Source: Lytechinus pictus (Eukaryota). Taken from it: a stretch of DNA of 64,000 nucleotides. Of the stretch, positions 12,496 to 51,594 are shown piece by piece (position 1 is the first letter of the stretch; every line of letters starts with the position of its first letter). A program made the position numbers and the translations under genes. The notes beneath the pieces are model-generated. The model did not search any database and was not told where the DNA came from. It saw only the letters and a list, made by a program, of their open reading frames with translations. The stretch lies in the NCBI RefSeq assembly GCF_037042905.1, contig NC_087249.1, forward strand, positions 7,874,001 to 7,938,000, read 5' to 3'.

Positions 12496-12606
12496 TTAAG
12501 GTATATTTGTTGCCATGTTCGTCGTTGCCATGGGGATATCAGTAGGAGGAGTTGTTTGTTGAAACTGGAGGAGGATGGTGAAGTAAGTGATCAAAGTGCT
12601 TACAAC
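12496..12606 (-). CDS. Gustatory receptor-like gene A, exon 4 (TM7)
   Basis: Acceptor tgtacag|. Reads VVSTLITYFTILLQFQQTTPPTDIPMATTNMATNIP*. Contains the Gr-family TYxxxxxQF motif. Confidence 0.9.
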   Translation of the reverse strand, partial: VVSTLITYFTILLQFQQTTPPTDIPMATTNMATNIP

Positions 12607-12767
12607 CTGTACAAGAGAAGAAGATAAAAAATATAGCAGTTCCAACATCAAATGCCATCGAAAAGGAAAAAGAAGTATATTCTAATCATGATTATAGAAA
12701 AACAAAATGTTTTCGTGGACTATAAAGTAAAACATAGATCAATCAGAACACAAATAAAAATACCTAC

Positions 12768-12860
12768 CTCTAAAACTCGTTCCTTGGTAATAACGAAGCA
12801 ACCAAGAGCTGTCATGCCGATTTCCGGTCCGTCCAACCGAGCCAAGAATAGAAGCTGGAC
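12768..12860 (-). CDS. Gustatory receptor-like gene A, exon 3
   Basis: tttag|VQLLFLARLDGPEIGMTALGCFVITKERVLE|gtaggt. 93 nt, phase 0/0. Matches the Gr-type TAxGxFxI segment preceding TM7. Confidence 0.9.
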
Positions 12861-13541
12861 CTAAATTATAAAAATAAGAAAAACAAAGATAGCAATATAT
12901 ATTTGGTATGTTTTATAATGTGATGATATAGGACATACGCATAAACAAATGTCAACTAAAATCTAAATTAATTCGCGATCATTAACTGTACCATTCTATC
13001 AACAATATTTTCTAATTGTCTTTATTGTGAATTTGTGTCACTCAGTTACTTTCTGACATGCCAATTACTGAAAGCGTTGCTTTCTGTTAATCTCTGGAGT
13101 ATCAAAGTTATAATAACAGTCGAGAATTTAAACGCACACAGCCATGTCTGTCGATCTTAGGGGATGAGGTATATATCCTTTCCCCAATGACTTAATATGA
13201 TTATGTAAAAATGAAATTAGTCCCTTGATAGAGGAAAATAATGAAAGCAGTGAAAGTTTACCCCTTTAACAGTTTAAAATGTTCAAAGCGATGGCAGTTC
13301 ATGATTTGGGACATTGAAGGCGGAAGTACATTTATGCTCTCATTTGGTCGTTTTCTCAACATATGATGTCATCGCTTTTTAATTTTTAAGCTCACAAATT
13401 TTCAGACAACAACCTTTAAAATCAAAAGAACAAAATACAAATTGCGACATGGAACTTCTTTATAACATTGAGACAGTCATTATTCTACATTCTGCTTGAT
13501 TTTTTTTTAATTTAGTAAACTAAATGTAATATAATCTGTAC

Positions 13542-13607
13542 CTGAAATAGATCTGAGTCAAACGTGTCCATCTGTAGTTCGTGCACACGTCTGCGAAAGG
13601 AATGTGC
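13542..13607 (-). CDS. Gustatory receptor-like gene A, exon 2
   Basis: tgcag|AHSFRRRVHELQMDTFDSDLFQ|gtacag. 66 nt, phase 0/0. Paralogous exon at 32108-32173. Confidence 0.88.
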
Positions 13608-13640
13608 CTGCATTGGAAGGAAAGAACAGAAAGAAATTAA

Positions 13641-14225
13641 AGGAGAATTAAACCTTTGGAACAAGATAGCTTGTGTGAAAACAGAAAAATCATAGAAACA
13701 GATCAACAAACGTTTGAGAAAAATCGGACAAATAATGAAAATGTGATGAGCATTTGAATATTGCGATCACTAATGCTATGGAGATCCTAAAATTGGCAAA
13801 GGGACAAAGATGTGTGATGTCACTTGTGAACAACTCTCCCCATTACTTTAGTATATATTTCACTTAAATTGCCTGTTTTATCACATCTATCAGTAGATCA
13901 TGTGTTCTTTCTATAGGAGGGCATGTAATACAGATTTTTAAAGAATACATCATGGATAAAAAGTTTGTATCACCATAAGAAAAAGCAAAAAGAGACATTT
14001 TGAGGGTGTTTTATAGTCCATCAAAGGGAAAGTTGTTCACATGTGACATCACACATCCTTGTCGCATTGCCAATGGGAGGATCTCCAGAGCAATAGTGAT
14101 TGCAATATTCAAATGCTCATAACTTTCTTATTATTTGTCTGATTTTTCTCAAACTTTCTCTGTTCTTATTCTTTTATTTTTCTCTTTCGACACAAGCCTA
14201 CTTGTTCCAAAGGTTTCATTCCCCT
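13641..14225. mobile_element. Kolobok-like MITE in Grl-A intron 1
   Basis: TTAA TSD (13637-40, 14226-29). AGG...CCT termini. Long imperfect TIRs (aaacctttggaacaag / cttgttccaaaggttt). Confidence 0.75.
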
Positions 14226-14969
14226 TTAACTGTTTCTTCGTTTTTTGATTAATCACCCAAGTCTACAGGAGAATAATAACATACATATATACCAATATAT
14301 TTTGAAACTAAATACCAGTTGTGGTAACGATATCAAAACGAGTTCGAACAGAATCCAATAAAATGACCACCCAAGTGTTTGTGTGTATAAACACAAAATA
14401 TATGCGCGAAATTGCTCTGGAAGAAAATGCGTAATTGCTGAGAAATGAGCAAAATAAGCACGAAATTCTATCAAATCTCGGGTATTTTTCAAGTTATGTT
14501 AATACACTGTCCCACATATGCTTTTCTGTATTTTTGATCATCAGGATTATCGATTTTTAGCTAAGATTTCATGATTTCACAAAGATAATTTTACATTAAT
14601 GTACCAGATCTAGATATATGATAATATGGGGACAATTAACCTTGATTTAAAAGACTTTCTTATGAAATAAATGTTTGCTGCTATAATGCTTTCTTTCAAC
14701 TTTAATGTAAGGAATTCACGGGTGCTTTCGATTTATTTTCTTTATTTTGTTTTGTTTTACATTTATGAGTTAAAGATTCAATTTAGAGGGGAATTCTTTA
14801 ATGTCTAACATTACATAACATGCTATCTACGTTTATGTATTTGATTACTCAAGATTTATCTTCTTTCATTTAAATAGCTCCATTTCCGAGGTTGGGTTCC
14901 CTTTACAATGACTAAAATGAATCTACAACTTTATCCATGTCAAGAAACATAGGCCTAATTAAAGTCTAA

Positions 14970-17109: not shown

Positions 17110-18438
17110 GTGTTAAGCATAGTGTCGAAAATTTTGGAGAAATGCGTGTATTCTCAAATTGAGAAATACTTTAAAGAATACAAAATCATTTATGAATTTC
17201 AGTCTGGTTTTAGGAATGGTTATTCTACTGAAACATGTTTAATTCACTTGTTGGATTTTGTTAGGAATGAAATTTCCGAAGGCCGTTATGTTGGGATGGT
17301 TCTTCTTGACTTACAAAAAGCATTCGATACGGTTAATCATGAAATACTCTTAAAGAAATTAGAAGTGATGGGTTTGAATTCAGCATGCTTAAATTGGTTT
17401 AGGTCTTACTTGACCAATCGCCATCAAGTGGTATCCATGCAAAATGTACTTTCATATTCTATGCCTATAAAGTGTGGAGTTCCACAGGGGAGCATAGTAG
17501 GTCCCATTCTTTTTATGTGCTATATCAACGATATGTGTATTTGTGTTAATGAAAGTAAATTACTTTTATATGCAGACGACAGTGTTTTACTCTACTCTGA
17601 TACAAGTCCTAAGCTGATCGGTGAAAAACTTAGTTTAGAATTATCAAATTGTGTTAAATGGATGACAGATAACAAGCTTAGCTTACATGTTGGTAAGACT
17701 GAAAGTATTTTGTTTTGTTCGCGGGGTAAGTCTAAGCATACAGATGATTTCAATATATACTATAACAATCAATTAATTAAGAGACAGAATTCCGTGAAGT
17801 ATTTAGGCCTGATATTAAATAGTGATCTCTCATGTACATCTATGGTTGACTCTATTGTCAAAAAAGCTAATGCTCGCTTGAAATTTCTATACCGGTACCA
17901 AAATTGCATGATTACGAAATCCAGACGCATTTTAAGCTTTTCATTAATACAGTGTTTATTTGATTATGCTAATGCAGCATGGTACTGCAGTCTTGGAAAG
18001 GTTGATCAAAAAAAGTTTATAATTATTCAAAATAAGATTGTTAGATTTATTACTTGCTTACACCCAAGAACACATGTTGGGAAGAATGAAATCGAAAAAG
18101 CTGGCCTTCTTCGCATAGACTTGAGGTCGCAACAACTTATACTTCACCATGTTCATAAAATTTTCTATTCAAACGAATATCATTACATATCAAAAAATTT
18201 TACACGTTCATCTAATATTCACGGGCATGAAACAAGAAATAGTCTGTTTAACTTTGTTGTACCTATGAGAAAAGGTCAAATTGGTAATACATTTTATTAT
18301 AAAGGTATACATTTTTGGAATTCCCTCCCTAATCATGTTAAATCGGTTAAGACTTTTACACAATTTAAAAGAATTGTTCCACTTTATATGTTTGTCATTT
18401 TGCCTCCGACGAAGATTCTGCTAGGATCGAAAGCTTAG
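17110..18438 (+). pseudogene. LINE ORF2 reverse transcriptase domain (5'-truncated; C-terminus interrupted by an 82-bp insert)
   Basis: 442-aa ORF with RT motifs. Removing 18373-18467 restores the end FKRVLKQHLKNVPTL* (stop 18504-18506). Confidence 0.88.
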
Positions 18439-19209: not shown

Positions 19210-20337
19210 CTTTTCATGAACTCGCACTGAGAAATAAGACAGAAGTGACACATTCGTGGAACAGGAAAGGATCCAAAAAGACGTCAAACTAATGTAGAAG
19301 CCGCCGTCAGCAAGATAAAAGAGCTGATATAACAAAAAAATTATGAGCGGAATGTTCGTCGAGTAAATAACGCCTATAAGAGGAGAGAATACATCATCAG
19401 CAACCTCGACAGTGTGGCAAATGACAGCGTGTCTTCGCCGAAAACAACTCAGTGTCTTTTTATCAATACGATGGGGAGAGTTGAGAGACTTGTCGAATTC
19501 TTCTGACAAGTTCTCAAATTGCGACGATATGTTGTAACATATTAGCGAGTAAAGAGCGATCGGAAATATATAGGTAGCAATTGCAAAGCCTGCGAATAGC
19601 AAGTTGAAGCCGCAAAAGTATTCCGAAAGCCATGGCCCACAAATGCCACTTGAGCTCAATGGGTTTAGTCCGAAGCCAAATGTTAAGAACCCGAGTGAAA
19701 CAAAGTTGATAAGCGTGACACAAGTACATGTTATCGTTACAAAAATGGCCCATTTGTCGTATCTTTTGGAATTTTTGTGCCGATTCTCATAAATTTCGTT
19801 TTTCGTGTTAGGGGTCGTCTCATCCAGTGAGCAATGTGTTCGTCTTGTGTAGAGGGATGTCACTGAAGAGTTCCAATGATGCCTGAAGTAGGGCATGCAC
19901 TTTTCTTTGGCACACACTGCAAACATGACGGTATTGCAGAGAGAAACGATGTAAAAGAACACTTGCAATGTTATCTGATCTTGCTTGAACATTCCATACC
20001 TGTCATTCAGAACAATAGCATATGTCACCCGGATCGCATTCAGCCACAGGTATATACACACGAAGGCGTGGTATACCCGAGAAAGGCTATTCTGCCAACT
20101 CCTCGACCTCGGTGGCTCAGGATCAGCATCCGGAAACCTCTCTGAACCTTCAGTCTGGTCCTGGGTTTTGAGGGCGCCCTTGAAAGATGTTTCGTGATAG
20201 ACTCCGACGATCTTCAAGGCCAGAAGGAGTGGTTCTAACATCTCATTCCAAAGAAGAATTTCTTTCACATCATTCCTTGGAGGTTGATCTTGTTTGGTTG
20301 CAGATTCCATATTCCCAATAACATCAATACGATTCAT
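19210..20337 (-). CDS. Gustatory receptor-like gene A, exon 1 (376 aa; full model 465 aa: 20337-19210, 13607-13542, 12860-12768, 12606-12496)
   Basis: Long multi-TM ORF with FRRRHAVICHTVEVADDVFSP (Gr-type RxxHxxLxxxVxxxxxxFS). Ends VHEK|gtaaaa, a phase-0 donor at the same position in all three paralogs. Confidence 0.9.
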
Positions 20338-21278: not shown

Positions 21279-24200
21279 ATGTCTACCTGTAATTTTTTTA
21301 GAGAATGCCTAAACAATTGCAACCATGACTTAAACATCTTGCATGAATTTCTGTCGCTTGATAATTTAGAATTTTCTCCTTGTAAGAAATATTTTACACC
21401 TGATGAGTTTAACACATACATTGAGAGTAAAGCAAAATCAGCATATCCATTTTCATGTATCCACTTGAATTCGAGAAGTCTACTCAATAATTTTGATAAT
21501 ATCATTTTATTTTTAAACAGTGTGAAACTTAAACCTACAGTAATTTGTATCACTGAAACTTGGTTCCGGGAGCACACTATACACCCTTTGTGTAATATAG
21601 ATGGATATAGTTTTGAAGGCGTTAGCCGTTTATCAAGAAGAGGGGGAGGAGTTGGAATTTTTGTAAATAATAGTGTGCAATATGTAAGACGCTCCGACTT
21701 AGAACATAATGATAGTTGTATCGAAAGTGTGTTTGTGGAAATCGTCAATGATAATTCTGGCATTATTGTTGGTTCAATCTATAGGCCCCCAGATCAGTCA
21801 ATTGATGATTTTTTTGAGAGATGCTCAAATGTTTTAAGTATTGTAAATAATGAAAATAAAATAGTTTACTTATTAGGTGATTACAATATCAATTTATTAA
21901 ATGTGGGTAAAGTGCAATATGTTGATAATTTCATTAATCTATTGTTATCACATCATATGTATCCATTGATTGACCATCCTACCAGAATCACGGATGAAAC
22001 AATCTCTTTAATTGATAATATAATCACCAATGATATACACGCAGACAAAGTTGAATCGGGAATACTAATAACTGACATCAGTGATCATTTACCTGTATAC
22101 TCTATTAGCTGGAATGATGTTAAATCACAGCAAAATTTAGATAAACCGCTTCGAATAATCAATGACAATAGTATAAAGTGTTTCTTAAGATCCATTCCAA
22201 TGGTCAATTGGTCTTGCCACAATAACAATCCAAATGCAAATTACGTGCAATTTCTAGAGAAGTTTTTAAATGTATATAACTTATGCTTCCCCTTGGAATA
22301 TTTGAAGAAAAAACCTAAAAAGAATAAACCATGGATTAATTTTGATATTCGAAAGTTGTCAAAGAAAAAATGTCGTTTATATCGACTTTATCTGAAAAAT
22401 CCATCACCATATCGTAAAGAAGTGTACAGAAAATGTAGAAATAAAGTCAGTAATATGATTAAACAAGCTAAAAAACATTATTTCTTGGAAAGTTTTGCAA
22501 ATTCCAAAGGAAATATGAAAAAAACTTGGAATACTGTTAATTGTGCAATGGGTCGTGCAAATAAAAAGTGCAATATTGATTTTCTGAAATGTAATAATCA
22601 AGCATTATATGATACCTCTGCTATTTGTAATGTATTCAATGAATATTTTATCAATATTGTAACTGAAATGAATTTTCCTGTTGATCAGGGCAATAATTTA
22701 AATTTGAATTTTTGTAGATATTTGGATAGAAATCCAAGGACTTGTTTTTTCAAACCAATCACTTGTACCGAGATTATTGATATTGTGTCAAACATAAAAA
22801 GTGATTGCAGTCCTGGGTATGATGATATAAGTATCAAGGTTATAAAGAAATCAATACATATTTTATGTCAACCCCTTTGTGCAATATTCAATCAATGTTT
22901 AGATCTCGGTATATTTCCTGATGAATTAAAGATTGCTCGTGTTGTTCCTGTATATAAAAATGGTCCGAGTGAAAATGTTTCAAATTACAGACCCATATCA
23001 GTCTTGCCAATTTTTTCAAAGATTTTAGAAAAGTGTATATATAATAGATTATTTGATTTTATAAACAAGTGCAATATATTATCTCTACATCAATACGGTT
23101 TTCGTGCTGGTCATTCAACTTCTTCGGCTCTTATTGATTTTGTCCATACTGTTACCAACGCTCTTGATGATAAGAAATATTTGATAGCAATGTTTTTAGA
23201 TTTGAAGAAGGCTTTCGATACAGTTGATCACGCTATTTTATTGAACAAACTAGAATTGTATGGCATAAGAGGTAATGTACTTAAATTATTTAAAAGTTAT
23301 TTATCCAACAGAAAACAATATGTTGAAATATCAAAATGCAAATCACAGCTTAAGATTATCTCATGTGGGGTTCCTCAGGGTTCTATTTTAGGACCGCTCT
23401 TGTTTCTCCTCTTTATTAATGATCTTAGTAAAGTATCCAACTTATTACATTGTATTATGTTTGCTGACGACACTAGTCTGTTTTTATCTCATACAAACTA
23501 TCATGTTTTACACAATTTATTCAATTCTGAACTTGAATTAATATCTGAGTGGTTTTATGCAAACAAAATGATAGTTAATCTTGCCAAAACCAATTATATG
23601 ATTTTTAGTAATTTATTTTTACCAGATAGTCTTTCAATTAGAATGTGCAATACAGATATTAAGTGTGTAACGTCAGTAAAATTTTTAGGAGTAACAATAG
23701 ATAATAAGTTTACATGGAAAAATCATATTGATAATCTGTGCAATAAGCTTGCCAAAAATATAGGAATAATGTATAGATTAAGATCATTTCCCAAGGAGAT
23801 TTTAAAACTAATGTATTATGCCATTGTATATCCATACCTCAATTATGGTATTCTAGCCTGGGGAAGTGCAAGTAGCATTCACATTGATAGATTATATATT
23901 TTACAAAAACGTGCAATAAGAATTATGTCTCATGCTCCTTACCTTGCCCATACGAATCCTCTATTTGTTGAATTGAATGTATTAACATTTTATGATATTC
24001 ATGCATTTCAAATTCTTATATTTATGTATTTATGTAACAATAACCTCTTGCCAGATTACATCAAAACATTCTTTAAGTTCAATAGTGATTTCCATGGATA
24101 CAACACAAGAAATGCAAAGGATTTCCATCTACCTAAGCCAAGACTCTCATCTTTTAAAAACTCAATTTTATTTCAAGGACCACAACTCTGGAATTCTATT

Positions 24201-24281
24201 TCTGTAGACATCAAGCAATCAGTTTCATTAAATGTTTTTAAGTCAAAATCAAGGCAATTTATTTTAAATAGTAATTCATAA
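21279..24281 (+). CDS. LINE ORF2: apurinic-like endonuclease plus reverse transcriptase (intact, 1000 aa)
   Basis: EN motifs HLNSRSL, ITETW, GGGV, IYRPP, GDYNIN, IDNI, SDHLP. RT motifs NYRPIS, DLKKAFD, GVPQGSILGP, FADD, FLG. C-terminal HGYNTR. Confidence 0.96.
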   Translation: MSTCNFFRECLNNCNHDLNILHEFLSLDNLEFSPCKKYFTPDEFNTYIESKAKSAYPFSCIHLNSRSLLNNFDNIILFLNSVKLKPTVICITETWFREHTIHPLCNIDGYSFEGVSRLSRRGGGVGIFVNNSVQYVRRSDLEHNDSCIESVFVEIVNDNSGIIVGSIYRPPDQSIDDFFERCSNVLSIVNNENKIVYLLGDYNINLLNVGKVQYVDNFINLLLSHHMYPLIDHPTRITDETISLIDNIITNDIHADKVESGILITDISDHLPVYSISWNDVKSQQNLDKPLRIINDNSIKCFLRSIPMVNWSCHNNNPNANYVQFLEKFLNVYNLCFPLEYLKKKPKKNKPWINFDIRKLSKKKCRLYRLYLKNPSPYRKEVYRKCRNKVSNMIKQAKKHYFLESFANSKGNMKKTWNTVNCAMGRANKKCNIDFLKCNNQALYDTSAICNVFNEYFINIVTEMNFPVDQGNNLNLNFCRYLDRNPRTCFFKPITCTEIIDIVSNIKSDCSPGYDDISIKVIKKSIHILCQPLCAIFNQCLDLGIFPDELKIARVVPVYKNGPSENVSNYRPISVLPIFSKILEKCIYNRLFDFINKCNILSLHQYGFRAGHSTSSALIDFVHTVTNALDDKKYLIAMFLDLKKAFDTVDHAILLNKLELYGIRGNVLKLFKSYLSNRKQYVEISKCKSQLKIISCGVPQGSILGPLLFLLFINDLSKVSNLLHCIMFADDTSLFLSHTNYHVLHNLFNSELELISEWFYANKMIVNLAKTNYMIFSNLFLPDSLSIRMCNTDIKCVTSVKFLGVTIDNKFTWKNHIDNLCNKLAKNIGIMYRLRSFPKEILKLMYYAIVYPYLNYGILAWGSASSIHIDRLYILQKRAIRIMSHAPYLAHTNPLFVELNVLTFYDIHAFQILIFMYLCNNNLLPDYIKTFFKFNSDFHGYNTRNAKDFHLPKPRLSSFKNSILFQGPQLWNSISVDIKQSVSLNVFKSKSRQFILNSNS

Positions 24282-25540: not shown

Positions 25541-26882
25541 CCACTCTCTCATTTTTTCCTTCTTGTTCTGTCTGTCTGTCTCTCTCTCCCTCACTTTGAC
25601 TTTCTTTCTATCTTCCTTATATAACTGTACAATAACCAAAATGAAGTTTCAAAAAAATATAAACTTTCCAATACAATTGATTTATTTCAAGATTATCCAT
25701 AATTGTTAGGTTCTTAAACCAGTCAACATGGTCGCAACTTATACGCTGTTCAAATGATTAATTGCTTTTACAGATCCCATCCTCTCAAACGAAAGTGATG
25801 CTAGGTGATCGAGCATATTCTTGTGTGGCCCCAAAACTCTGGAATGGCTTATATACCCTTGGAAGTCAGGATAGCGCCATTCATAAACAGCTTAAAAACA
25901 AAACTTGAATCACATTTATATCATTTATTTCATTAATTATAACCATTATGAGAACAGTAAAATATATGATTGATATATGATATGTGAATAGTTTCTGCAC
26001 TCTATTTATCTATATGGATGAATGGATGAATGGGTACCAGGTAGAATTTATTTCGCTTTAGCGCCGATATGGCGGCTCAGCTACTGCCGGTGTAATGATG
26101 ATGCCAAGTATCAAAGCGCAGCTGTGTATATGCACAATGTAACTGCGCTATTTAAATAGACATATCATCATTATTTTTATTTATATTATTATTATCATTT
26201 TGTCATGATTATTATTAATAATTTTATCATCATTAAATGCGATTAGATGTAATTGGGAATATACATCGCCTCTGTTATCACGTTTCCAAGGAAGGGGATG
26301 GGTGTATGTAAGCTTACATAATATGTATATCACTTGATTAAGACGGTATGAAAATTGTGGACTTGAATAAATTTTACTGGAAAAAATGCATGAAATTCGT
26401 TCTCTCTCTCTCTCCCTTAAAAGAATCATATTGCCCTCGTCTAGAGACTCTGGCCAATTCTGTTGCGGGCAATATATCTGGTGTTCCCTTCAAGGCCAGT
26501 CAATATTATACAAATCATATATAATTATAACCATGATGATCATATTCATCCTTTACATCTGAATTGAAATCGCATCGTTCAACTTTTTCAGTATTCAAAA
26601 ATAAGTTTTCATTCAATTATTGTAAAAATAATTATTGAAAATTTATTACTACATTACTACACAGTATGCGCAAACTGTTAACAAATATACATGTAGATAT
26701 ATATACACACTATACACATTCCACTTTTCTTTTGCTACATAATGACCTTATCCTATTGGTAGAACTGTCTAGATCTGCCTTAAACAAGATCGTAGAGACT
26801 ATACACAGATCGTCGTACGCCAACCCACGAGGATAATGAGGAGTTTACGATCACCTTCCAAGTGTCAATTGGACATAAATGA

Positions 26883-27020
26883 TCATGGTTCAGGAGAAGT
26901 ACGGCTGAAAGAGGGAATATTTGTTGTCATGTTCGTCGTTGCCATGGTGATATCAGTAGTAGGAGTGGTTTGTTGAAATTGGAGGAGGATGGTGAAGTAA
27001 GTGATCAACGTGCTGACAAC
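26883..27020 (-). CDS. Gustatory receptor-like gene B, exon 4 (TM7)
   Basis: tttttcag|VVSTLITYFTILLQFQQTTPTTDITMATTNMTTNIPSFSRTSPEP*. Confidence 0.92.
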   Translation of the reverse strand, partial: VVSTLITYFTILLQFQQTTPTTDITMATTNMTTNIPSFSRTSPEP

Positions 27021-27036
27021 CTGAAAAATAGAAAAA

Positions 27037-28461: not shown

Positions 28462-28554
28462 CGCTAAAACCCGTTCCTTAGTAATAACGAAGCAACCAAG
28501 AGCCGTCATGCCGATTTCTGGTCCGTCCAACCGGGCCAAGAATAGAAGCTGGAC
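28462..28554 (-). CDS. Gustatory receptor-like gene B, exon 3
   Basis: tttag|VQLLFLARLDGPEIGMTALGCFVITKERVLA|gtaggt. 93 nt. Confidence 0.9.
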
Positions 28555-32107: not shown

Positions 32108-32173
32108 CTGAGATAGATCTGAGTCAAACGTGTCCATCTGTAGTTCGTGCACACGTCTGCGTAGGGAATGAGC
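32108..32173 (-). CDS. Gustatory receptor-like gene B, exon 2
   Basis: tgcag|AHSLRRRVHELQMDTFDSDLSQ|gtacta. 66 nt. Confidence 0.88.
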
Positions 32174-32667: not shown

Positions 32668-33798
32668 CTTTTCATATACTTGCACTGCGAAAAGGGACGG
32701 CAATAACACATTGGTGGAACAGACGAGGAGCCAACAGAGCGTCATACTGATGTACAATAGGTTTCCATTAGCAAGATAAAAGAGCTCATACAACAGAAAG
32801 ATAATGAGTGGAATGTTCGTCAAGTACACGACTCCCACAAAAGGAGAGAATACATCATCAGCAACCTCGACAGTGTGGCAAATAACAGCATGTCTTCGCC
32901 GAAAACAATTCAGTGTCTTTTTATCAATCGGGTGGGAAGAGTTGAGAGCCTGGTCGAATTCCTCTGACAAATTTTCAAATTGCAACGAAATGTTGTGACA
33001 TATGAGCGAGAAAAGAGCACCCGGAAATGCATAAGCAGCATTTGAATAAACTGCGAATATCAAATTAATGCCGCAAAATGGCTCTGAAAGCCACGGTCCA
33101 CAGATGCCCATTGAAGTCAGCGGGTTTAGTCCGAAGCCAAATGTTGAGAATACCATACCGGCAATGTTGATAAGCATGACACAAGTACATGTTACCGTTA
33201 CAAGCATAGCCCATTTGTTGTATCTTACGGGAGTTTTGTGCTGATTCTCATTAATTTCGTCTTTCGTGTTTAGGGTCGTTTTGTCCAATGAGCAATGTGT
33301 TCGTCTTGTTTGAAGGGACGTGACCGAAGAGTTCCAATGACGCCGGAAGTAGGGCATGCATTTGTCCCTGTAACACACTACGAACATGATGGTATTGCAG
33401 ATAGATACGATGTAAAAGTACACTTGCATTGTTATCAGTTCTTGCGAGAATATTCCGTACCTGTCATTCAGAGCAATAGCATATGTCATCCGGATCGTAT
33501 TCAGCCACAGGTATATACACACCAAAGCGTGGTATACTCGAGAAATACCATTCCGCCAACTCTTCGACCTAGGTGGCTCAGGATCAGCATCAGGAAACCA
33601 TCCTGAACCTTCAGCCTGGCCCTGAGTTTTGAGGGCGCCCTCGAAAGCTGTTTCGTGATAGACTCCAACGATCTTCAAAGTCAAAAGAAGGGGTTCTAAC
33701 ATCTCATTCCAAAGAAGATTTACTTTCACATCATTCCTTGGAGGTTGATCTTGTTTTGTTGCAGATTCCATCTTCCCAATAACAGCAATACGATTCAT
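32668..33798 (-). CDS. Gustatory receptor-like gene B, exon 1 (377 aa; full model 475 aa: 33798-32668, 32173-32108, 28554-28462, 27020-26883)
   Basis: Paralog of 19210-20337. Ends VYEK|gtaata (phase 0). Confidence 0.92.
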
Positions 33799-34650: not shown

Positions 34651-37511
34651 CATGGGCGAAATCTCTCCTTAAACATGTTAAAGGTAGGGGGGACACAATT
34701 GACTTTTCCGTTTTTTTCCGTTTTTAAGTNNNNNNNNNNNNNNNNNNNNNNNNNNNNNNNNNNNNNNNNNNNNNNNNNNNNNNNNNNNNNNNNNNNNNNN
34801 NNNNNNNNNNNNNNNNNNNNNNNNNNNNNNNNNNNNNNNNNNNNNNNNNNNNNNNNNNNNNNNNNNNATTTCGAAGAGGGGAGGTATTCCTAACTAAAGA
34901 TGAAAGGCCTCAATAAATAATGCAAGCGCGAAGCGCGAGCCCAAATATGTCGATATTTTATAAATTGTGACCTGGAAATTGAACATTCTGAACGTTTTTT
35001 GTGATCATGAACTAAATTCGAACCTACCTAAACCATTAATGCGAGCACGAAGTGCGAGCTGAAAGTTTTTGATTTTCCAACCTAAAAACTGGGCATTCTT
35101 AACACTTTTTCAAATCATGAACAGGATATGAATTACCTAAAACTGAACATTCGTAACACTTTTTCAAATCATGAACAGAATAGGAATTTAACTAAATCAT
35201 AGATGCGAGCGCGAGCTGAAAGTTTTTGATGATTTTCCCATCTAAAAACTGAACATTCTTAACAGTTTTATAAAAATCATGATCAGGATAGGAATCTAAT
35301 AAAACAATGCTAGCGCGAAGCGCGAGCTGAAAGTTTTTTTTATTTTCCAACCTAAAAACTGGACATTCGTAACACTTTTTTCAAATCATGAACAGGATAG
35401 GAATTTAACTAAATAATAGCTGCAAGCTGAAAATGTTTGATTTTCCTACCTAAATACTGGACATTCATAGCACTTAAAAAATAATATGAACGGAATAAGA
35501 ATCTAAACAATGAATGAAAGCGCGAGCTGAAAAGGTTTTTGATTTTCCAACCTAACAACTGGACATTCTTAGTACTTAAAAAAAATCATGAACAGGAAAG
35601 GAATCTAAACAATTAATGCGAGCGTGAAGCACGAGCTGAAAGATTTTGATTTTCCAACCTAAAAACTGGACATTCTTAGCACTTAATAATGAACGGAATA
35701 AGAATCAAAACAATGAATGCGAGCGCGAAGCGCGAGCTGAAAGGATTTTTGATTTTCCAACCTAAAAACTGGACATTCTTAGTACTTAAAAAAAATTATG
35801 AACAGGAAAGGAATCTAAACAATTAATGCGGGCGTGAAGCACGAGCTGAAAGTTTTTGATTTTCCAACCTAAAAACTGGACATTCTTAGCACTTAATAAT
35901 GAACGGAATAGGAATCTAAACAATGAATGCGAGCGCGAAGCGCGAGCTGAAAGGGTTTTTGATTTTCCAACCTAACAACTGGACATTCTTAGTACTTAAA
36001 AAAAAATTATGAACAGGAAAGGAATCTAAACAATTAATGCGGGCGCGAAGCGCGAGCTGAAAGTTTGTTATTTTCCAACCTAAAAACTGGACAATCGTAA
36101 CACTTTTTCAAATCATAAACAGGATAGGAATCTTACTAAACAATATTAGATTCGAGCGCGAAGTGTGTGCTGAAGATATGTCATTTCCGGCCTACAAAAT
36201 TGGTATTATTAGCATATTTTAAATCAAGGACAGGGTGGCTATCTAACTAAATTTTAATTGATATGAGCGTGAAGCGTATCCTGATTTTTTTCAATTTTCC
36301 GACCAAAAAAGGCATCTTCTTTTCACCTTATAGCAATAAAACAGGATAATATCTGACCCAACCATATTACCGATGCGAGCGCGAAGCGCGAAATGAATTT
36401 TATTTATATTCGGATCTGAAAACTGGATCTTTCAAGCACTTTTGAAATAAAGAACAAGCAGTCTATCTCAATAAACAATGCGAGCGCAAAGCGCGAGCTA
36501 ATTTTTTTTCTTTAAGATTTAAACCTACAAATTATGAAAAAGATGGATATCTTCCTAAATAAATGATTTGATTTTATATATTTCGATCTTAAAAGTGAAA
36601 GAAAAAAATTTAAGCACGTTTTGAAAGAAGAGATGGCTGTGTATTAATGCGAAGCGCGAGCGATTTTTTTATTTTTTTTACACAATGACCTGAAAGTTTT
36701 ATTTTTTCCGATTATTCCCCTCCCCTTCCATCATTTGATTGTCTTCCTCGTCCTATCTTTCTTCTTATTTTTCTCCTCACCTTCCCATTTTGCGCCGCCA
36801 ATAGGAGGCGGGCAGCCGCTTCGTCCCCTTGATCTACCTATAATGACCCCTCCCACGTACGGCAGGAATTTCGTGTAAAAATGGAATATAAAAGTCTCGT
36901 TAATAGAGTATTTAAAAACAAATTTTGGGGGATTAAACAAAGGTATGTTTTTACGGGGTATGGAACATTCTCGTCTACCATCTATACACTAAATTTACTT
37001 ATAAGTATCCAGGGGCGATTTTCTGTTTTCGTCATTTTCATTAGTTATGAAATTGACAATGGGCATCGAAGTCAGCAATGTCATCACTCTTTGGCTGACA
37101 TATAGGGCTAGATGCGAGTTCGGGAATAGTCGGGCCGGTATGCCTTTTCTTTTCCTATCCAACTGAAAGAGGGTCACTTATATTTCACATTTTTATAAAT
37201 ATATCCAATGATTTTTGTGATGTGAGATTTTCATGACGGCATTTTAATATTGTAACTGTTATACCCATACTATTTTCAGGTATCAACATTGATTTTTTTT
37301 TAACAGGGAGCGATGTTATATTTTGCCTTTAACAAAAACTCTTTGTTTATATTTATTTCGAAATTCGAGGATACATGTGTATAATTTCGATTTTGAATTA
37401 TGTATTTTGATCCATAATAAAATACCACAAATAGTGGGGGGACATTTGATATTACGTACCCCCTTTCCAAAATGGTAGGGGGACGCGTCCCCCCTGGGAT
37501 TTCCGCCCATG
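34651..37511. mobile_element. Non-autonomous hAT-like element carrying an internal tandem array of about 115-120 bp units
   Basis: Ends catgggcgaaatc / gatttccgcccatg. Flanks gggtgaca / aggtgacg (degenerate 8-bp TSD). Array units contain gcgagcgcgaagcgcgagctgaaa...ttttccaacctaaaaactggacattc. Confidence 0.6.
34730..34867. other. Assembly gap
   Basis: Run of N. Confidence 1.
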
Positions 37512-42973: not shown

Positions 42974-43717
42974 ATGCCGTCAACACGTCAAGATTCTTCT
43001 GCTGGAAGTAGTCTTGCTCCAGACTTTTCTGATGTCCACGATATCATTAAAAAAATATTTTGTGAAGATGATTTTGTGTCCGCGTTGGAGAGGAGCATTG
43101 AGAAAGTTCTCTCAAAGCGCCAGCGAGAGTTTGAGGAGAGGATAGAGAGGCAGGAAGGTGAAATCCATGATCTACAAGTAGCATTGAATCAAAAGGAGGC
43201 TGAGATCCACTCAATCACCACTTCCATGAAGAAGCTGGAAAGCAGAGTAGAGGCTTACGAGGGTAAGAGCAACGAGCTAGAGCAGTATAGTAGGAGGAAC
43301 TCTGTTCGGGTGTTTGGTGTGCCAGAGTCATCAACAGAGTCTACGGACAACCTGGTGATGAAGGTGGCAACAGATCGCCTTGGCTGCCCGATAAGCAAGG
43401 CTGACATCGAGAGATCACATCGATCGGGAAAGCCCCGCTCTGACAGAAAGCCTCGGCCTATCCTGGTCAAGCTCTGCTCCCATCGAGTGAAGGCTGCACT
43501 GATGAAGGATCGCCGTAAATTGAAGGGGTCAGGTATCTCCATCCAGGAGGACCTAACAAAGTTAAATCATCAAATTCTCATGAAATTGTCCTCCCATCCA
43601 AAAGTCGAAGCGGCTTGGTCAACTGATGGGAGAGTCATGGCTGCCCTCAAGACCAACCAAGAGGGAATCCAAGTTAAGAGGTCCTTCTCATCACTGCAAC
43701 AAGTCTCTTCTTTATAA
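42974..43717 (+). CDS. LINE ORF1 (coiled coil plus L1-ORF1-like RRM/CTD), 247 aa
   Basis: Heptad-rich E/K region, then LEQYSRRNSVRVFGVPE, IERSHR, PRPILVKL, IQEDLT, AWSTDGRV. Confidence 0.9.
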   Translation: MPSTRQDSSAGSSLAPDFSDVHDIIKKIFCEDDFVSALERSIEKVLSKRQREFEERIERQEGEIHDLQVALNQKEAEIHSITTSMKKLESRVEAYEGKSNELEQYSRRNSVRVFGVPESSTESTDNLVMKVATDRLGCPISKADIERSHRSGKPRSDRKPRPILVKLCSHRVKAALMKDRRKLKGSGISIQEDLTKLNHQILMKLSSHPKVEAAWSTDGRVMAALKTNQEGIQVKRSFSSLQQVSSL

Positions 43718-44130
43718 CTTCCAACTTTTGTGTTTAACTTTATTTCCACTGTTACCTCTCTCAGGGGTTTACCTTTTAACTGTAACTTGAACATTACTTC
43801 ACCCTTTTTCTGATTTCCACTTATTTTCTTAGTTTCTTTTATCATTCTTTTCTTCCCGCTTTTTTGTCTAACTTGTGTCTCGTTGTATATTTATAATGTC
43901 ATTTGCTCTTGCATTTGCTTTTCTTCTATATACTATGTACATACCTGTATATATTCATCATATAGTTGTTAATGTGTCTGTGTGTGTGTCTGTGAATATG
44001 TGTAATGGCTGTCCTCAGATTTCCATGTTTCATCCACCCTTGTTGATATTTTATATTTGTTTGGTCTGTGACGGATATGGTTTAATAAATGCTGTATTGG
44101 TTTATTGTTTGCTTGTTGAAATCTCTCCTC

Positions 44131-47080
44131 ATGGATGACGGATTTAATATTCCAGAACCGGTTATTAATGAGTGTAAATACATAAACTGTGAAGATTTCC
44201 AATGTAATGGTGAAAACTTTTCCGTTATGCATATTAATTCGAGAAGTCTCTTTAAAAATTTTGAAGATTTGGCGGTCTTGTTATCATGTATAAATCATAA
44301 TTTTTCTGTGATTGGTGTTTCAGAAACCTGGTTTACTCCATCCACAGAAGTAGCTATGTTTGATATTCCTGGATATTCACTTGTTCAAGTATGTCGATCA
44401 AATAAAAAAAGGTGGTGGTGTAGCATGTTATGTCAGAGAGGGGCTTGATTACAAATTACGCAATGATTTATCAACGGCAAATACTTATTATGAGTCTGTA
44501 TTTATTGAATTGAATAATGCAAACAAAAAGTCAATTGTTGGTTGTGTGTATAGAGCCCCTGGCAATGATATTCGATCATTTACTGATGACTTTGACCAAG
44601 AAATGCAAATATTGAGTAAAGAAAATAAGGACATTTATATTATGGGTGATTTTAACATTAACTTGTTAAATGCTGATACAGATGAAAAGGTTAGAGATTT
44701 TAATAATTTCATGTGTTCATTTGGCTTGTTTTCCCTAATCACTAAACCTACACGCATAACATCATCTTCAGCAACCTTAATTGATAATATATTTACCAAT
44801 TGTGTTCAATATCAATTCTGCTCTGGAATATTTTGTTCTGATTTTTCTGATCATATGCCGATTTGTAGCATTAACAAAGGCAATGCCATTACTTCTAGTG
44901 AAACAAAAAGAAAAGTGTTCAGACGTCTAATTACTGAAGTAAGAATGAATTACTTTAGACAAGATTTACTTAACACAGATTGGTCTGTTTTATATGATTT
45001 GTTTGACGCTAATGTGTCGTTTAACTATTTTAGTGACATTTTTTCTCAGTTATACAATGAACATTTCCCTTTAATTAAATGCAGTGGTAAGAATAAATGC
45101 AGGAAACCATGGATTACTCCAGTTCTTCTATAATCCATTCATAAAAAGCAGAAGCTTTACTATGCATATATAAAAAATAAAAACGAAATTAATAGGAAAA
45201 AGTATATTGATTACAAAAATACATTGACAAATCTTGTTCGTCAAAGTAAGAAGAATTATTATGATAATGTTTTTCGAACAAATCAAAATGATATGAGGAA
45301 GACTTGGTCCCATATCAATGAATTGCTTGGGAGGGGGAAGAAAACGCCACTCCCAAATGACATGTATCATAACGAATCGTTGTTAAATTCAGATCTACAT
45401 AAAGCTGAGTATTTTAATAAATATTTTATTGATCTACCTTCTAAAATAAGCAAGAAAATTCCTTCTGTCCAATCGTCATACAGAGATTTTATGTCGGTCC
45501 AAAATCACTCCTCATCCTTGTATTTTCGACCAACATCTGTTTGTGAAATTTCTAATTTGGTTTCGACTTTAAAACCATCGAAGGCATGCGGGTCAGATGA
45601 TGTTTCTCCCAAGGTCATAAAAAATTGTATTCAATGCATTGTTGATCCCTTATGCGATATTTTTAATAAGTCCTTGTTTCAGGGTATTGTCCCTGACAAA
45701 CTGAAAATAGCTAGAGTAGTCCCAGTATTTAAAAAGAATGATCGTAAATGCATTGAAAATTACAGACCTATTGCGTTGTTACCCATATTCTCAAAAATTC
45801 TTGAGAAAATAGTGTACAAAAGAATGGATGATTTCCTTCAACTTCATAACATAATGATACCACAACAATTTGGATTTCGAAAGAATTACTCCACAAGTAT
45901 GGGCGTCTTGAATTTAGTAAATACCATTATAAGTGCAATTGATAGTGGAAAATTTTGTATTGGTGTGTTTCTTGATTTATCGAAAGCATTTGATACTATC
46001 GATCATGATATATTATTGTACAAGCTTGAGCATTATGGTGTTCGTGGGGTAGCCTTAAGTTGGTTCAAAAATTACTTAACGAATAGATGTCAGTATGTAA
46101 CGATTAATGGAGTTAAATCACAATCTAAGGAGGTTAAATGTGGTGTACCCCAAGGCTCGGTTCTGGGTCCCTTATTGTTCTTGATTTATGTTAATGACAT
46201 TATAAATTCATCAAAATTGTTTACTTATTCACTATTCGCAGATGACACTTGCTTACTTTCCCATCACAAAGATATGGAAACTCTCATACTCTCAACTAAC
46301 AATGAAATTAAAAATATATTTAAATGGTTTTGCTGTAACAAGCTTTTATTAAATGCTAGTAAAACTCAATATATTGTCTTTAGAACAAGGGGTAAACGAG
46401 TCCCTGAAGATACTAATCCATTATCAATAGGAGGCCATCAGATCAATCGAAGTCAAGATGTAAGGTTTTTGGGAGTTGTAGTTGATGATCACTTATCATG
46501 GAAAAATCACCTCAGTTATGTTTGTACTAAGGTATCAAGGAGCGTTGGTGTCATTTATAAATTACGTTTCTCTCTCCCTCAGCAGACCTTAGTAACTCTT
46601 TACAATGCTATTATTATGCCACACTTAAATTATTGTAATGTTGCATGGGGAAATACATATAGGAACCATTTAAACAAACTGCTAGTTCTTCAGAAGAAAG
46701 TTATGAGGCTCATGACATATTCGAATTACAGATGTCCAAGTATTCCTTTATTTCTGCAATTGAAGATTTTGCCTCTTGATGATTTAGTCTCCCTCAATTG
46801 CTTGATATCTATGTACAAATCACAATCCTCTCAAAACTGTTCATTTTTAAAAGATGCATTTGTTGTTAACTCAAATGTCCATTTGTACAATACACGGCAG
46901 AAAAATCTTATCCACCAGCCACTTGCAAGAACAAATACTGCTTTGAATTCTTTTGTGATAGTTTGTACAAAAGAATGGAATAAGTTACCACAAAACTTTA
47001 GATCCAGTCCAACACTGCCCATATTTAAAATTTCATGTCGAAAATATTTATTTGAAAGATTACAAAATATCTTAAATTGA
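44131..47080 (+). pseudogene. LINE ORF2 (EN plus RT) with one frameshift and one premature stop
   Basis: +1 frameshift in the A-run at about 44404-44410 (CRSNKK/GGGV). In-frame TAA at 45131-45133. Otherwise continuous EN and RT motifs. Confidence 0.92.
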
Positions 47081-47734
47081 TTCTTGATAAACCATGTGTG
47101 TTGTGTGTGTGTGTGTGTGTGCGTGTTGTGTTTGTATGTATTTTCTTATTTTACTCTTTAGATTATCATTGTAAATATTTTTTTCATCTCATTATTGTTG
47201 TAATGTACTTTATAAGGGGCCCCTCTCACAAGCTCTGCTTCTATGGGGTCCCAAACCTATCATGCATTCTCATTTTTGTTAAACTATGTGATATGTCTCT
47301 TGTTCTTGATTGGTTTGAATAAATTTGAACTTTGAACTTGAACACGGCAGCTCCACGACGAACAGGGAAACTATACATGAACAATTCAGGATTGCTCTGC
47401 AAACACGGCAATTCACGGATGACGCCCGATGGTTTTTACTTTCCAAAGACAGTTGTTCATGCCTCTCGGACGTTCATGGACCTTCATGAACCAACGATGC
47501 CCAGGCACAGAGGTGGAAAAAATGTGCCCAAGGCGTCTATCTCTTCCCGGTCGCGAAATTATTTTTCCCACCGAGTTCTGGACCAACATATGAATATTCA
47601 TGACTTGCGTCTTCGGATTAAGAGTACGCATGCGCGTGGACTTTGCCTCGACCATGTACCAGAGCCGGTCGTAAGCATTCACGTTCAGTTGCTCAGAATT
47701 AATTAGCATCGTCAAATTACCGGTAACCTTACAT

Positions 47735-47868
47735 NNNNNNNNNNNNNNNNNNNNNNNNNNNNNNNNNNNNNNNNNNNNNNNNNNNNNNNNNNNNNNNNNN
47801 NNNNNNNNNNNNNNNNNNNNNNNNNNNNNNNNNNNNNNNNNNNNNNNNNNNNNNNNNNNNNNNNNNNN
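47735..47868. other. Assembly gap
   Basis: Run of N. Confidence 1.
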
Positions 47869-48739
47869 CTAGCTGGCAAGACATGTGCTAGGCTAGAGCT
47901 CGCTTAGGCTAGCGCATTAACTTTACCTCAAATCTGGACCTGTCTAATGACGATAATAAATTTGACATCTGACTGCAATTTTGACAACAATTTTCATACT
48001 TTAAACATAGCTAACTCTAAAAAACGATAACAATCCATTAGGATCAGTGACGTACCTAGGATTTTCCACAGGGGGGGGCAAATCCGTCCGCCAAAAAATT
48101 TGACAAGCAAAAAAAAGAAGAAAAAAGTTTTTCACCCAAAATGTAAGGTCATTTAGTCCAAAAGGTATTATTTCGATTGTGAAGTGATGAATTCTTCACA
48201 ATGAAAGACCAAAAATAGTAGGGGGACATTTTATATTGTATCCCCCTACTATTTTTGGTAGGGGGACACATACCCCTGTCCCCTCTGGGATTTCCGCCCA
48301 TGTGGGTTGAAGATGTCACATCCCCACTATCCTGTTTCTTGTGTTATTACATGGAATCAAAATTGTTTCATTTTTTCATACCAGTGTGAATGATATGTCT
48401 CCCTTATAATGAAATAAGTTGCAGCAAAGAATATCTAATAGACTAAATCAGTTGTCAATTCAACTGTTTTTGGTTCTTGAAGGGAAAATATTAAATAAAC
48501 CTAATTTTATATAATAAAATACAAAAGAACAAGTGGGGATATGACATCATCAGTTTGCTCATTGAATATTAATGAAGACATGCTTAAAACTGTTTCACCG
48601 GAATAATGCTAATCTTTAAAATACAATAACTTTGATATTCCTTGTAGGATTTTGATCAAATCTTTATTCTCATGTTCGTCTGATTTATCTTTATCTGTTC
48701 AAACCATATTACCTTCAGTGTGGAGTTTCAGATCAGAAT

Positions 48740-49490
48740 ATCAAAAATTTTCTGCTCGCGCTTCGCGCTCACATTATTAATGTAATAATATATAAAATTA
48801 CCTATAATTTTCTTGATTTACAAAACATGAATAGAATGTCCCAATAAAATTATAGGTCTGAAATCTCAATTTTGTTTCCGCTCGCGCTTTGCGCTCGCAT
48901 CGATTGTATAGTTATATACCTATCCTGTTAGTCATGATTAGAAAAGTGCTTAAGATGTCCTGTTTTTAGGTCTGAAATCTCATTTTTATTTCCGCTCGCG
49001 CTTCGCGCTCGCATCAATTGTATAGTTATGTACCTATCCTCTTCATTATTAGAAAAGTGCTTAGAATGTCTCGTTTTTGGTCTGAAATCTCAATTTTGTT
49101 TCCGCTCGCGCTTCGCGCTCGCATCAATTGTATAGTTATATACCTATCCTGTTCATGATTGCGAAAAGTGCTTAGAATGTCCAGTATTTAGGTCGGAATG
49201 TTAGATTTTTCAGCTCGCGCTTCGCGCTCGCATTATTTGATTGTTGATATATGTATCGTCTTAATGGGTAACTGCAAACAGTCCTTATATCACTTCCCTT
49301 TCGATCAGACCAGAGCGTATACAAAAAATATCTGCTCGCACTGGTCACATTCGCAGTTATTATTTGTTACATATACATCTTGTTCAGGACCACAAACATC
49401 GCTCAAAATGTTCAATTTTTCTGAACAAAATACATGAAATTTCCCCCCCCCAAAAAAAAAAAAATAGCTCGCGCTTCGCGCTCGAGTTAT
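48740..49490 (-). repeat. Tandem units of the gcgagcgcgaagcgcgagc repeat family (reverse orientation)
   Basis: Repeated gctcgcgcttcgcgctcgcat...aaaagtgcttagaatgtcc units. The same family occurs at 34920-36660, 54130-54620 and 60670-61130. Confidence 0.8.
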
Positions 49491-50478
49491 CTAATTATAT
49501 ATCTATGTTCTTTTATAAGAAGAATGAAGTGACTGTCATATATATGTCTGTATATATATATGTGTGTGGTGAGGGTGTGTGTGGTGCCCTTAGAGGTGTG
49601 TGTGTAATTATGGAAAATTCAATTGTGTCCCCCCCCCCCACCTTCGAGGAGAGATTTCAGCACCCCCACTGAAAAAATCGTTCCCAGGTCCCTGGGTTAC
49701 CGGTAATTTGACGATGCTAATTCATTCCACGCGCATGCGTACTCTTAATCCGAAGACGCAAGTCATGAATATTCATATATTGGTCCAGAACTCGGTGGGA
49801 AAAATAATTTCGCTTCCCGGTCACTCCGGATCTGGTCCGGCGTGTAAATCTGACTGATCTGGATTGATCAGGGGGAGATATCCGGACATAGATTTTGAAC
49901 TAAATGAGTAAAGGTATAAGTTTTATACGTTTCGGTGTATATTTTCAGTGTACAACATGGTACAAAGAGGAGAGTTGTATACTTCTGTGACATCACAGAT
50001 CTTGGTTGCATTGTCGATTGGAGTACCTCTGTAGCATAAGTGATTTCGACATGCCAAATGCTCATAACTTTCTTATTGCTTGTCCAATTGTTCTCAAATG
50101 TCCATTCATTTCATTCTTTAATTTTCCTTTTTCATACGCTCTAACTCCTTTGAAATACTGAGATTTGGAGACAGTGATTAATGTGTGAAAGGAGCCATTT
50201 AGTAATTTTAATAGGCAATGGGTGATTTCAAGTTCAGTGTTGACCTGTTGGTGTTAGGTCAACTTTTCCACGATTATAACACCAAACATAAAATGAAGAT
50301 GGTCCCGAAAAGTCATTCACTAGTAGTTGAGATGTCAATAATGTGATCTGGATCAGTTTTACAAACTCTGAATAAGTTTTGGAGCAAGAGGAAGCGATCC
50401 AAATTTCAACTTCAACACCAAGGCCAACACCGGACTTGAAAACACTCATTGCCCTCGACTCCGATGTATTCGTTTTAC

Positions 50479-51594
50479 CTTGTCATGAACTCGCACTGTG
50501 AAAAAGGACAGCAGTAAGACAGTGGTGGAACAGCTAAACAGCCAGAAAAGCGTCAGACCAGTGAAGATTAAGTCACCGTCAGCAATATAAAAGAGCTGAT
50601 ACAACAGAAAAATGATGAGCGGAATGTTCGTCGAGTAAATAACGCCTATAAGAGGAGAGAATACATCATCAGCAACCTCGACAGTGTGGCAAATAACAGC
50701 GTGTCTTCGCCGAAAACAATTCAGTGTCATTTTATCAATCGGATGGGGAGAGTTGAGAGCCTGGTCGAATTCTTCCGACAGGTTGTTGAATTGCAACGAA
50801 ATGTTATGACATATGAGGGAATAAAGAGCGCCCGGGAATATGTACGCAGTAGTTGCATAAACTGCGAAAATCAAGTTGATGCCGCAAAATAGCTCTGTAA
50901 GCCAAGGTCCGCAGACTCCACTTGAACTCAGCGGGTTTAGTCCTCCGAAGCCAAATGTCAAGAAAATCATAGTAGCAACGTTGAAAAGTGTCATACAAAT
51001 ACAAGTTATCGTTACAAATACAGCCGATTTGGTGTACTGTTTAGGATTCCCATGTAAGTTTTCTGCCTTTGTGTTGAGGGTTCTATCGAATGAGCATTGT
51101 GTTCGTCTTGTGTTAAGGAATGTAACCGAAGAGTTCCAATGACGATGGAACAAGGGCATTCCTTTTTCCCTGTAACACACTGCGAACATGATGGTATTGC
51201 ATATAGAAACGACGTAAAAGTAAACTTGCAATGTTATCTGATCGTACCTGACACTGAGAGAAATAACGTAGGTCATCCGAATCGCATTCAGCCACAGGTA
51301 TATACACACGAAGGCGTGATATACCCGAGAAAGGCCATTCCGCCAGCTCCTCGACCATGTCGACCTCGGTGGCTCAGGATCAGCATCAGGAAACCACCCT
51401 GAACCTTCAGTCTGGTCCTGGGTTCTGAGGGCGCCCTTGAAAGCTGTTTCGTGATAGACTCCGACGATCTTCAAAACCAGAAGGAGGGGTTCCAACATCT
51501 CATTCCAAAGAAGATTTACTTTCACATCATTCCTTGGAGGTTGATCTTGTTTGGTTGCAGAGTCCATCTTCCCAATAACAGAAATGCGATTCAT
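50479..51594 (-). CDS. Gustatory receptor-like exon 1C (372 aa, intact); no dedicated exons 2-4 visible
   Basis: Third paralog of the long first exon. Open frame from ATG to VHDK|gtaaaa (phase-0 donor). Confidence 0.88.

Follow-up and report, generated by a model that had tools for sequence, protein, structure and literature searches.

Alternative use of tandem first exons is an established feature of insect chemoreceptor loci. In Drosophila Gr28b, Gr39a and Gr23a, and in the cockroach Gr60a-m locus, each of several long first exons arranged in tandem can be spliced to the same three short 3′ exons (Robertson et al. 2018, PMC6175461). The solved receptors of this insect gustatory and odorant receptor (Gr/Or) superfamily comprise four subunits placed round a central pore lined by the helix S7b, with the ligand pocket located within S1-S6 and an anchor domain composed of S7a and the inner S4-S6; the phenylalanine of the motif TYhhhhhQF, defined for the seventh transmembrane helix (TM7, S7b), closes the pore and is replaced by the glutamine on opening, and the succession S7a, beta-hairpin, S7b is known for insect GRs (PMC12635824). 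Aside from the fold, the superfamily is recognized by two hallmarks, namely the TM7 motif and three phase-0 introns at the 3′ end of the gene (PMC7746228; PMC6175461). Echinoderm members, referred to as gustatory receptor-like proteins (GRLs), have been on record since 2015 (Robertson 2015; Saina et al. 2015, both as cited in PMC7746228), and almost no functional data are available for GRLs outside arthropods and nematodes (PMC7746228). A starfish paper that was considered as a further source of GRLs (PMC6267866) concerns GRL101, an unrelated G protein-coupled receptor (GPCR). Here, we describe a stretch of 64,000 nucleotides (nt) from the sea urchin Lytechinus pictus (C5:7874001-7938000; GC content 36%), referred to below as the window, which carries three paralogous GRL-type long first exons, A, B, and C, all on the minus strand. 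A first-pass annotation, made from the letters alone, had correctly placed it in a deuterostome genome and proposed a tandem array of insect-type receptor genes. Exons A and B belong to complete genes of the insect-type superfamily and B is transcribed and spliced as predicted, while C is probably not a separate gene but an alternative first exon of the B gene.

The three first exons are carried by open frames at 20337-19123 (A), 33798-32662 (B), and 51594-50449 (C) and share 73-77% identity in pairwise protein comparison and 80-82% at the DNA level. In each frame GTAA directly follows a conserved codon, ...VH(E/D)K or ...VYEK, and marks the first-exon cut point; cutting at this donor leaves 376, 377, and 372 codons, respectively, close to the three multi-spanning first exons of about 375 amino acids (aa) that had been proposed. 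DNA comparison revealed three short blocks with 90-92% identity downstream of A and of B, representing small exons in frame, each bounded by AG/GT; since the lengths of all exons preceding the last one (1128/1131, 66, and 93 nt) are multiples of 3, the three introns are in phase 0. Gene A (LOC129261859) thus comprises, on the minus strand, a first exon of 376 codons covering S0 to S6 (19210..20337; open frame, GTAAAA donor), a 66-nt exon 2 in phase 0 with AG acceptor and GT donor (13542..13607), a 93-nt exon 3 in phase 0 encoding S7a and the beta-hairpin (12768..12860), and a last exon of 111 nt including the stop codon, which encodes the S7b pore helix with TYFTILLQF (12496..12606). The second locus (LOC129260554, minus strand) contains the proximal first exon B of 377 codons (32668..33798), exon 2 of 66 nt (32108..32173) and exon 3 of 93 nt (28462..28554), both in phase 0, and a last coding exon of 138 nt including the stop codon, again with TYFTILLQF (26883..27020); its putative distal first exon C, intact with 372 codons and a GTAAAA donor, lies at 50479..51594 and lacks a 3′ exon set of its own.

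Joining yields products of 465 aa for A and 475 aa for B, in which TYFTILLQF (12562-12588 in the A tail, 26976-27002 in the B tail) stands 21 and 30 residues before the C-terminus. The same joins are present in RefSeq: XP_054755863.2 (P0001) corresponds to A, containing exons 2 and 3 as given above and starting at Met10, with 100% identity over the first exon, and XP_054754495.2 (P0009) corresponds to B, with which exon B is identical. Both small-exon sets (66, 93, and 111/138 nt) and both proteins formed through three phase-0 GT-AG introns had been delineated properly in the first-pass annotation; within the proposed array, A and B stand as full genes, while C, devoid of small exons, is probably not a separate gene.

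The insect Gr/Or-type assignment proposed from the sequence was upheld by profile and structural comparisons. Full-length A and B-type proteins score 48.6 and 44.9 bits against Pfam 7tm_7 (cut-off 26.6 bits) and 36.3 and 37.6 bits against Trehalose_recp (cut-off 21 bits), whereas the first exons alone, with 24.4, 13.2, and 26.4 bits, miss the 7tm_7 cut-off, so that full-length sequences are needed for recognition. Exhaustive profile search collected 451 representative proteins at E <= 0.001, and a 65-sequence alignment drawn from these relatives served both as the profile compared with the Protein Data Bank (PDB) and as the input to AlphaFold2. Compared with all PDB sequences, the profile matched 16 distinct chains, all of them insect Gr/Or/Orco, the best being Gr64a (E 4.8e-25), aligned across nearly the whole profile. 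The AlphaFold2 model of B (predicted local distance difference test, pLDDT, 84.2; predicted template modelling score, pTM, 0.84) contains helices at 28-44, 81-113, 119-143, 148-220, 239-286, 293-341, 347-387, 395-408, and 425-446, that is, a short N-terminal S0 helix, six long helices (S1-S6), S7a (395-408), a two-strand hairpin (416-422), and S7b (425-446). When this model was compared with the PDB using Foldseek, ranks 1-24 were all occupied by insect OR/Orco/GR structures, 23 of them with E <= 0.001; template modelling (TM) scores by target length were 0.65-0.74 in the top group and below 0.2 for later matches, and sequence identity in the structural alignments to the insect proteins was only 11-16%.

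Both tails of the window, and a third tail outside it, carry the TYhhhhhQF signature, and A and B display both hallmarks other than the fold, the TM7 motif and three phase-0 3′ introns. Because profile, fold, motif, and intron structure all agree, membership of A and B in the insect-type Gr/Or (GRL) superfamily is well supported, and together with the two gene models we consider it practically certain. The fold match would also imply the inverted topology, with the N-terminus inside and the C-terminus outside. The resemblance extends to Orco (6C70), MhOR5 (7LIC), Gr43a (8JM9/8X82), Gr64a (8JME/8ZE0), and BmGr9 (8VC1/8UVT), with which the B model shares the fold, the S7a/hairpin/S7b arrangement, and TYhhhhhQF on the pore helix; in contrast to these channels, it has an unstructured N-terminal region, a low-confidence S0-S1 loop, and a 30-residue, Thr-rich C-terminal tail following the motif.

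Transcription of B was assessed by aligning RNA runs X28, X29, and X3 and raw RNA-seq reads of X21 on positions 26870-32860. B exon 1 is fully contained in runs X28-X30, all from one study, in which the stretch with the introns is nearly absent. In X28, one contig of 2606 nt passes from the end of B exon 1 through exons 2, 3, and 4, and a 1103-nt contig in X29 likewise unites exons 1-2-3-4, the joints falling exactly at 32668/32173, 32108/28554, and 28462/27020, each with GT..AG on the minus strand. In both contigs the first exon is thus connected with the exon bearing TYFTILLQF, as the proposed gene structure predicted. The last joint recurs in X3 from another study, and the first and last joints recur in raw reads of X21 from a third one, so B is joined to the small exons in runs of three studies. 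The transcript contig continues beyond 26870 as 3′ untranslated region (UTR). Unique bins in the introns of B have zero depth, whereas repeat-derived bins reach very high depth, presumably due to transcribed copies elsewhere. B is, therefore, transcribed and spliced as predicted.

In tblastn searches, with complete proteins and with the peptides of individual exons (E up to 50) as queries, the only tail exons of the window were the two assigned sets, with none lying between C and B, and no tail specific for C was detected by blastn between the paralogs or by whole-genome search. The frame of C remains free of stops in two species, over 372 codons in L. pictus and over 370 in Lytechinus variegatus, and its donor GTAAAACG is identical in the two species, with GTAAAA in both. 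The ratio of non-synonymous to synonymous divergence (dN/dS) of C between these species is 0.33 (bootstrap 95% interval 0.20-0.55; the maximum is 0.72, and 0 of 300 replicates reach 1), similar to 0.31 for A and 0.36 for B, and judged by this ratio C is under purifying selection and not decaying. A coding exon that is selected and provided with a donor, yet lacks an acceptor of its own, points to exon 2 at 32173. The same arrangement is encountered in a gap-free 30-kb locus of L. variegatus (L012), where a C-type exon (5606-6715) and a B-type exon (10001-11131) are followed by one tail only (11607-11672, 14416-14508, and 20028-20165), with the A ortholog starting at 27313. The corresponding NCBI gene, LOC121415159, is annotated with two products, X1 of B-type (475 aa, P0008) and X2 of C-type (468 aa, P0005), which are identical over the last 98 residues.

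Joining of several first exons to one tail would not be confined to this pair. Upstream of the window, in the stretch 67899-120908 of window-extended coordinates (C5:7941899-7994908), five more first exons are found on the same minus strand, D (80555-79518), E (84603-83545), F (114767-113733), G (118037-117003), and H (120908-119892), all open, all followed by GT, and 22-28% identical to A. Their sole tail, the third one with TYFTILLQF, lies on the minus strand downstream of D (75290-75225, 74553-74461, and 68021-67899). Between the three tails, identity in exon 3 amounts to 90-100%, compared with only ~25% for first exons of the two groups, and the first exons B, C, and D-H all end with ...VH(E/D/Q)K or ...VHIE followed by GT, which is the same phase-0 site. 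In Strongylocentrotus purpuratus a gap-free locus carries first exons of H-, F-, and E-type spaced 3-4 kb apart and then one tail, so that at least three first exons precede it, and the end of a fourth, G-like one is visible at the edge of the locus; LOC105442954 of this species represents an E/F-type exon joined to a tail of the third type (P0016). One 3′ exon set after the last first exon, and none between first exons, is therefore the layout in L. pictus, in gap-free L. variegatus, and in gap-free S. purpuratus. It resembles Drosophila Gr28b/Gr39a/Gr23a and cockroach Gr60a-m in the tandem first exons on one strand, the same phase-0 site, and the single C-terminal set of three exons, and differs from the insect loci in belonging to a deuterostome and in that splicing of the distal exon C was not seen in RNA.

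Public gene models in this family deserve caution. The RefSeq model of F (P0011, 356 aa) and the L. variegatus model of E (P0015, 371 aa) are single-exon read-through open reading frames (ORFs) without S7 and are probably incomplete. A 606-aa protein, P0006 (LOC129261847), in which B exons 1-3 are followed by the C-terminal, DNA-binding part of NEIL1, was considered as a fusion gene and rejected: the NEIL1 exons are located at C5:6985219-6988654 on the plus strand, ~0.9 Mb away and opposite to B, indicating a chimeric model derived from an older assembly.

Several observations weigh against assigning C to the B gene, and in part against the account as a whole. X28 and X29 gave the B form only and no C transcript, and the joint between the C donor at 50479 and exon 2 at 32173 was not seen in the aligned RNA runs, among which X21, with a depth of ~1x here, is too shallow to bear on C. 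As far as the database shows, RefSeq of L. pictus holds only the B form of LOC129260554, and the L. variegatus X2 is an automatic gene model whose underlying support is not visible. The two assembly gaps between C and B are of estimated length only, and the tetramer score considered below may come from the memory that the model has of solved OR/GR tetramers. These gaps, 34730..34867 (~0.9 kb upstream of the B start codon) and 47735..47868 (2.6 kb downstream of the C donor), touch no exon, and if their true lengths were greater they might conceal small exons that would make C an independent four-exon gene, in the manner of A and B, each of which has a tail directly downstream. Yet both are flanked by blocks collinear with gap-free L. 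variegatus, where no tail separates the C- and B-type exons and where the unaligned sequence opposite the gaps amounts to ~280 bp and ~0 bp, that is, at most ~280 bp, too little for three exons with two introns; the genome-wide search found no orphan tail either, which makes a hidden tail highly improbable.

More weight, though still that of an unlikely explanation, can be given to the idea that partial duplication stranded C as a young pseudo-exon that is not functionally spliced, the L. variegatus X2 being an annotation artefact. It agrees with the lack of C transcripts in the RNA runs examined, and the read-through models of F and of L. variegatus E, deprived of S7, illustrate that annotation of this family is unreliable. 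It is hard to reconcile with a frame of 372 and 370 codons kept open in two species separated by a synonymous divergence (dS) of 0.14, with the dN/dS of 0.33 that no bootstrap replicate out of 300 brought to 1, and with the identity of the donor GTAAAACG in both. Assignment of C to the B gene as an alternative first exon is thus favored by conservation and gene order, and we consider it likely; the whole account, combining GRL channels, the gene layout, and the tail shared by B and C, appears likely to much the same degree.

Comparative data allow dating of the expansion. A maximum-likelihood tree built from the first exons unites A, B, and C each with its L. variegatus ortholog, with support of 100/100, 100/100, and 89/99, respectively, and places the single A/B/C-type exon of S. 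purpuratus, which has its own tail, as sister to A+B+C; E and H have S. purpuratus orthologs in the same tree. Divergence dS between the paralogs A, B, and C is 0.35-0.41 versus 0.11-0.14 between L. pictus and L. variegatus. Tree and dS together place the A/B/C expansion in the Lytechinus lineage, after the split from Strongylocentrotus and before the separation of L. pictus and L. variegatus. The recent local expansion put forward at the first reading consequently holds in relative terms, with one A/B/C-type first exon in S. purpuratus against three in Lytechinus. One of the duplications took in a whole gene (A versus B with its tail), and the other took in the first exon only (B versus C). 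The S. purpuratus relatives, which carry the name ‘Gustatory receptor’ in UniRef (LOC115920745 and LOC105442954), belong to the same family and have the same tail sequence and gene structure, and the protein P0007, 54% identical to A, represents the single sister exon; against the one first exon and one tail of S. purpuratus, Lytechinus has three first exons and two tails.

In the mechanism that we propose, B and C would serve as mutually exclusive first exons, each with its own start codon and with a donor at the same phase-0 site, connected to one three-exon tail, and splicing of C to the shared exon 2 with skipping of B would produce an isoform of 470 aa. Each first exon would supply S0-S6, the variable half that in insects contains the ligand pocket, and the shared small exons would supply S7a, the beta-hairpin, and S7b with TYFTILLQF, that is, the anchor domain and pore helix. 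In B numbering exon 2 corresponds to residues 378-399, exon 3 to 400-430 (S7a and hairpin), and exon 4 to 431-475 (S7b, with Y438, Q444, and F445). By homology and modelling, the products may assemble as tetrameric ligand-gated cation channels, in which Q and F of TYFTILLQF would gate the pore.

Prediction of four copies of B residues 236-450 gave a score of 0.77 versus 0.00 for the best of 3 controls, a value that was calibrated on two copies and may reflect memory of solved relatives. Of proteins solved as one-chain pairs, 21 of 30 reach that mark, and of those solved as single chains, 0 of 23; for eukaryotes the proportion is 17 of 29 (7 of 16 in animals), with only 1 of 7 among those lacking an older solved relative. 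The tetramer runs share >= 95% of contacts with partner pLDDT >= 79, and contacts are predicted at 293-311, 379-411, and 418-445, such a tetramer would be held through S5, S6, S7a, and S7b and would in this resemble the solved insect channels. Since like complexes have been solved, this prediction would denote likeness and not binding. Most of the predicted contact residues come from the shared small exons, which suggests that B and C isoforms would have identical assembly and pore surfaces and would differ only in the putative ligand-binding half.

The biological role of such channels is a separate matter. Proteins with the Gr/Or fold could have developmental tasks, or serve as sensors of light, temperature, or the internal state, instead of acting as environmental chemoreceptors, and the gene layout would accommodate this equally well. 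Early developmental expression is reported for GRLs of S. purpuratus and Nematostella, one Nematostella GRL may act in body patterning, and light or heat is the stimulus for C. elegans LITE-1/GUR-3 and fly Gr28b (PMC7746228). Lineage-specific duplication of a variable half in combination with a fixed pore half, on the contrary, resembles chemoreceptor repertoires, although this likeness is suggestive only, and we regard a non-chemosensory role as a serious possibility falling somewhat short of the probable.

The remaining features of the window concern the surroundings of the receptor exons. A third assembly gap (12025-12190) begins ~300 nt past the stop codon of A and probably lies inside the 3′ UTR of this gene; because no exon abuts a gap and no frame crosses one, the A and B models are unaffected. 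The C-to-B interval, 16.7 kb in L. pictus versus 3.3 kb in L. variegatus, owes its size mainly to retrotransposon insertions and a duplicated 0.4-kb block: the L. variegatus counterpart of this block matches both 40840-41246 and 37508-37914, 3.3 kb apart, each with 82.8% identity, and the doubling may reflect duplication in place, a repeat, or, given the nearby gaps, an artefact of assembly. Three non-LTR retrotransposon copies lie on the plus strand, all antisense to the GRL genes: a truncated one with a reverse transcriptase ORF in intron 1 of gene A (17110..18438; Pfam RVT_1, 102.7 bits), one with an uninterrupted ORF of 1000 aa encoding endonuclease and reverse transcriptase between the A and B/C genes (21279..24281), and one in the C-to-B interval, where a coiled-coil ORF1 is followed by endonuclease and reverse transcriptase in separate frames (42974..47080). 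A non-coding block of ~170 nt with 73-75% identity is found in intron 1 of L. pictus A (14022-14188) and just 3′ of the C exon (49963-50133), as well as in the L. variegatus locus just 3′ of the C exon (7379-7515) and in intron 2 of the B/C gene (12551-12716). The L. pictus pair (A 14188-14022, C 50133-49963) was considered as an exon and discarded, as stops occur in all frames and denote a shared non-coding or repeat piece; a repeat and a conserved intronic element are both conceivable. The GRL genes are flanked by two intronless ORFs of rhodopsin-family GPCRs on the plus strand, at 7661-8803 (380 aa) and 62379-63410 (343 aa), with Pfam 7tm_1 scores of 98.6 and 118.6 bits, respectively, the latter also matching the olfactory-receptor profile 7tm_4, so that two unrelated families of candidate receptors are interleaved in the region.

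The genes themselves are already present in RefSeq as ‘uncharacterized proteins’ with Pfam domains attached, and the family is already known in echinoderms. What goes beyond the visible public record is the RNA confirmation of the exon structure of B and the layout of many first exons to one tail across three sea urchins; full-text searches, outside which Robertson 2015 and Saina et al. 2015 remained, yielded no statement on alternative first exons in sea urchin GRLs. The layout corrects public models, including those of F and of L. variegatus E, in which the pore helix is missing, and the older fusion of B with NEIL1. L. pictus lends itself to laboratory breeding and genetic modification, and the RNA-supported B model and the assignment of exons to receptors offer concrete targets for knock-out, in situ hybridization, and electrophysiology. 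On balance, we lean slightly toward the view that deuterostome GRL loci share the modular design of insect Gr28b/Gr39a, in which alternative first exons with their own promoters encode the ligand half and one shared cassette encodes pore and anchor. If so, eight receptors in ~110 kb of L. pictus would be derived from only three transcription units, and the near-identical cassettes would permit mixed tetramers. Given that the layout of many first exons to one tail is conserved in S. purpuratus, the modular design would either go back to the ancestor of bilaterian GRLs or represent a striking convergence, and, if alternative first exons are confirmed, receptors of echinoderms would have to be counted per first exon and not per gene.

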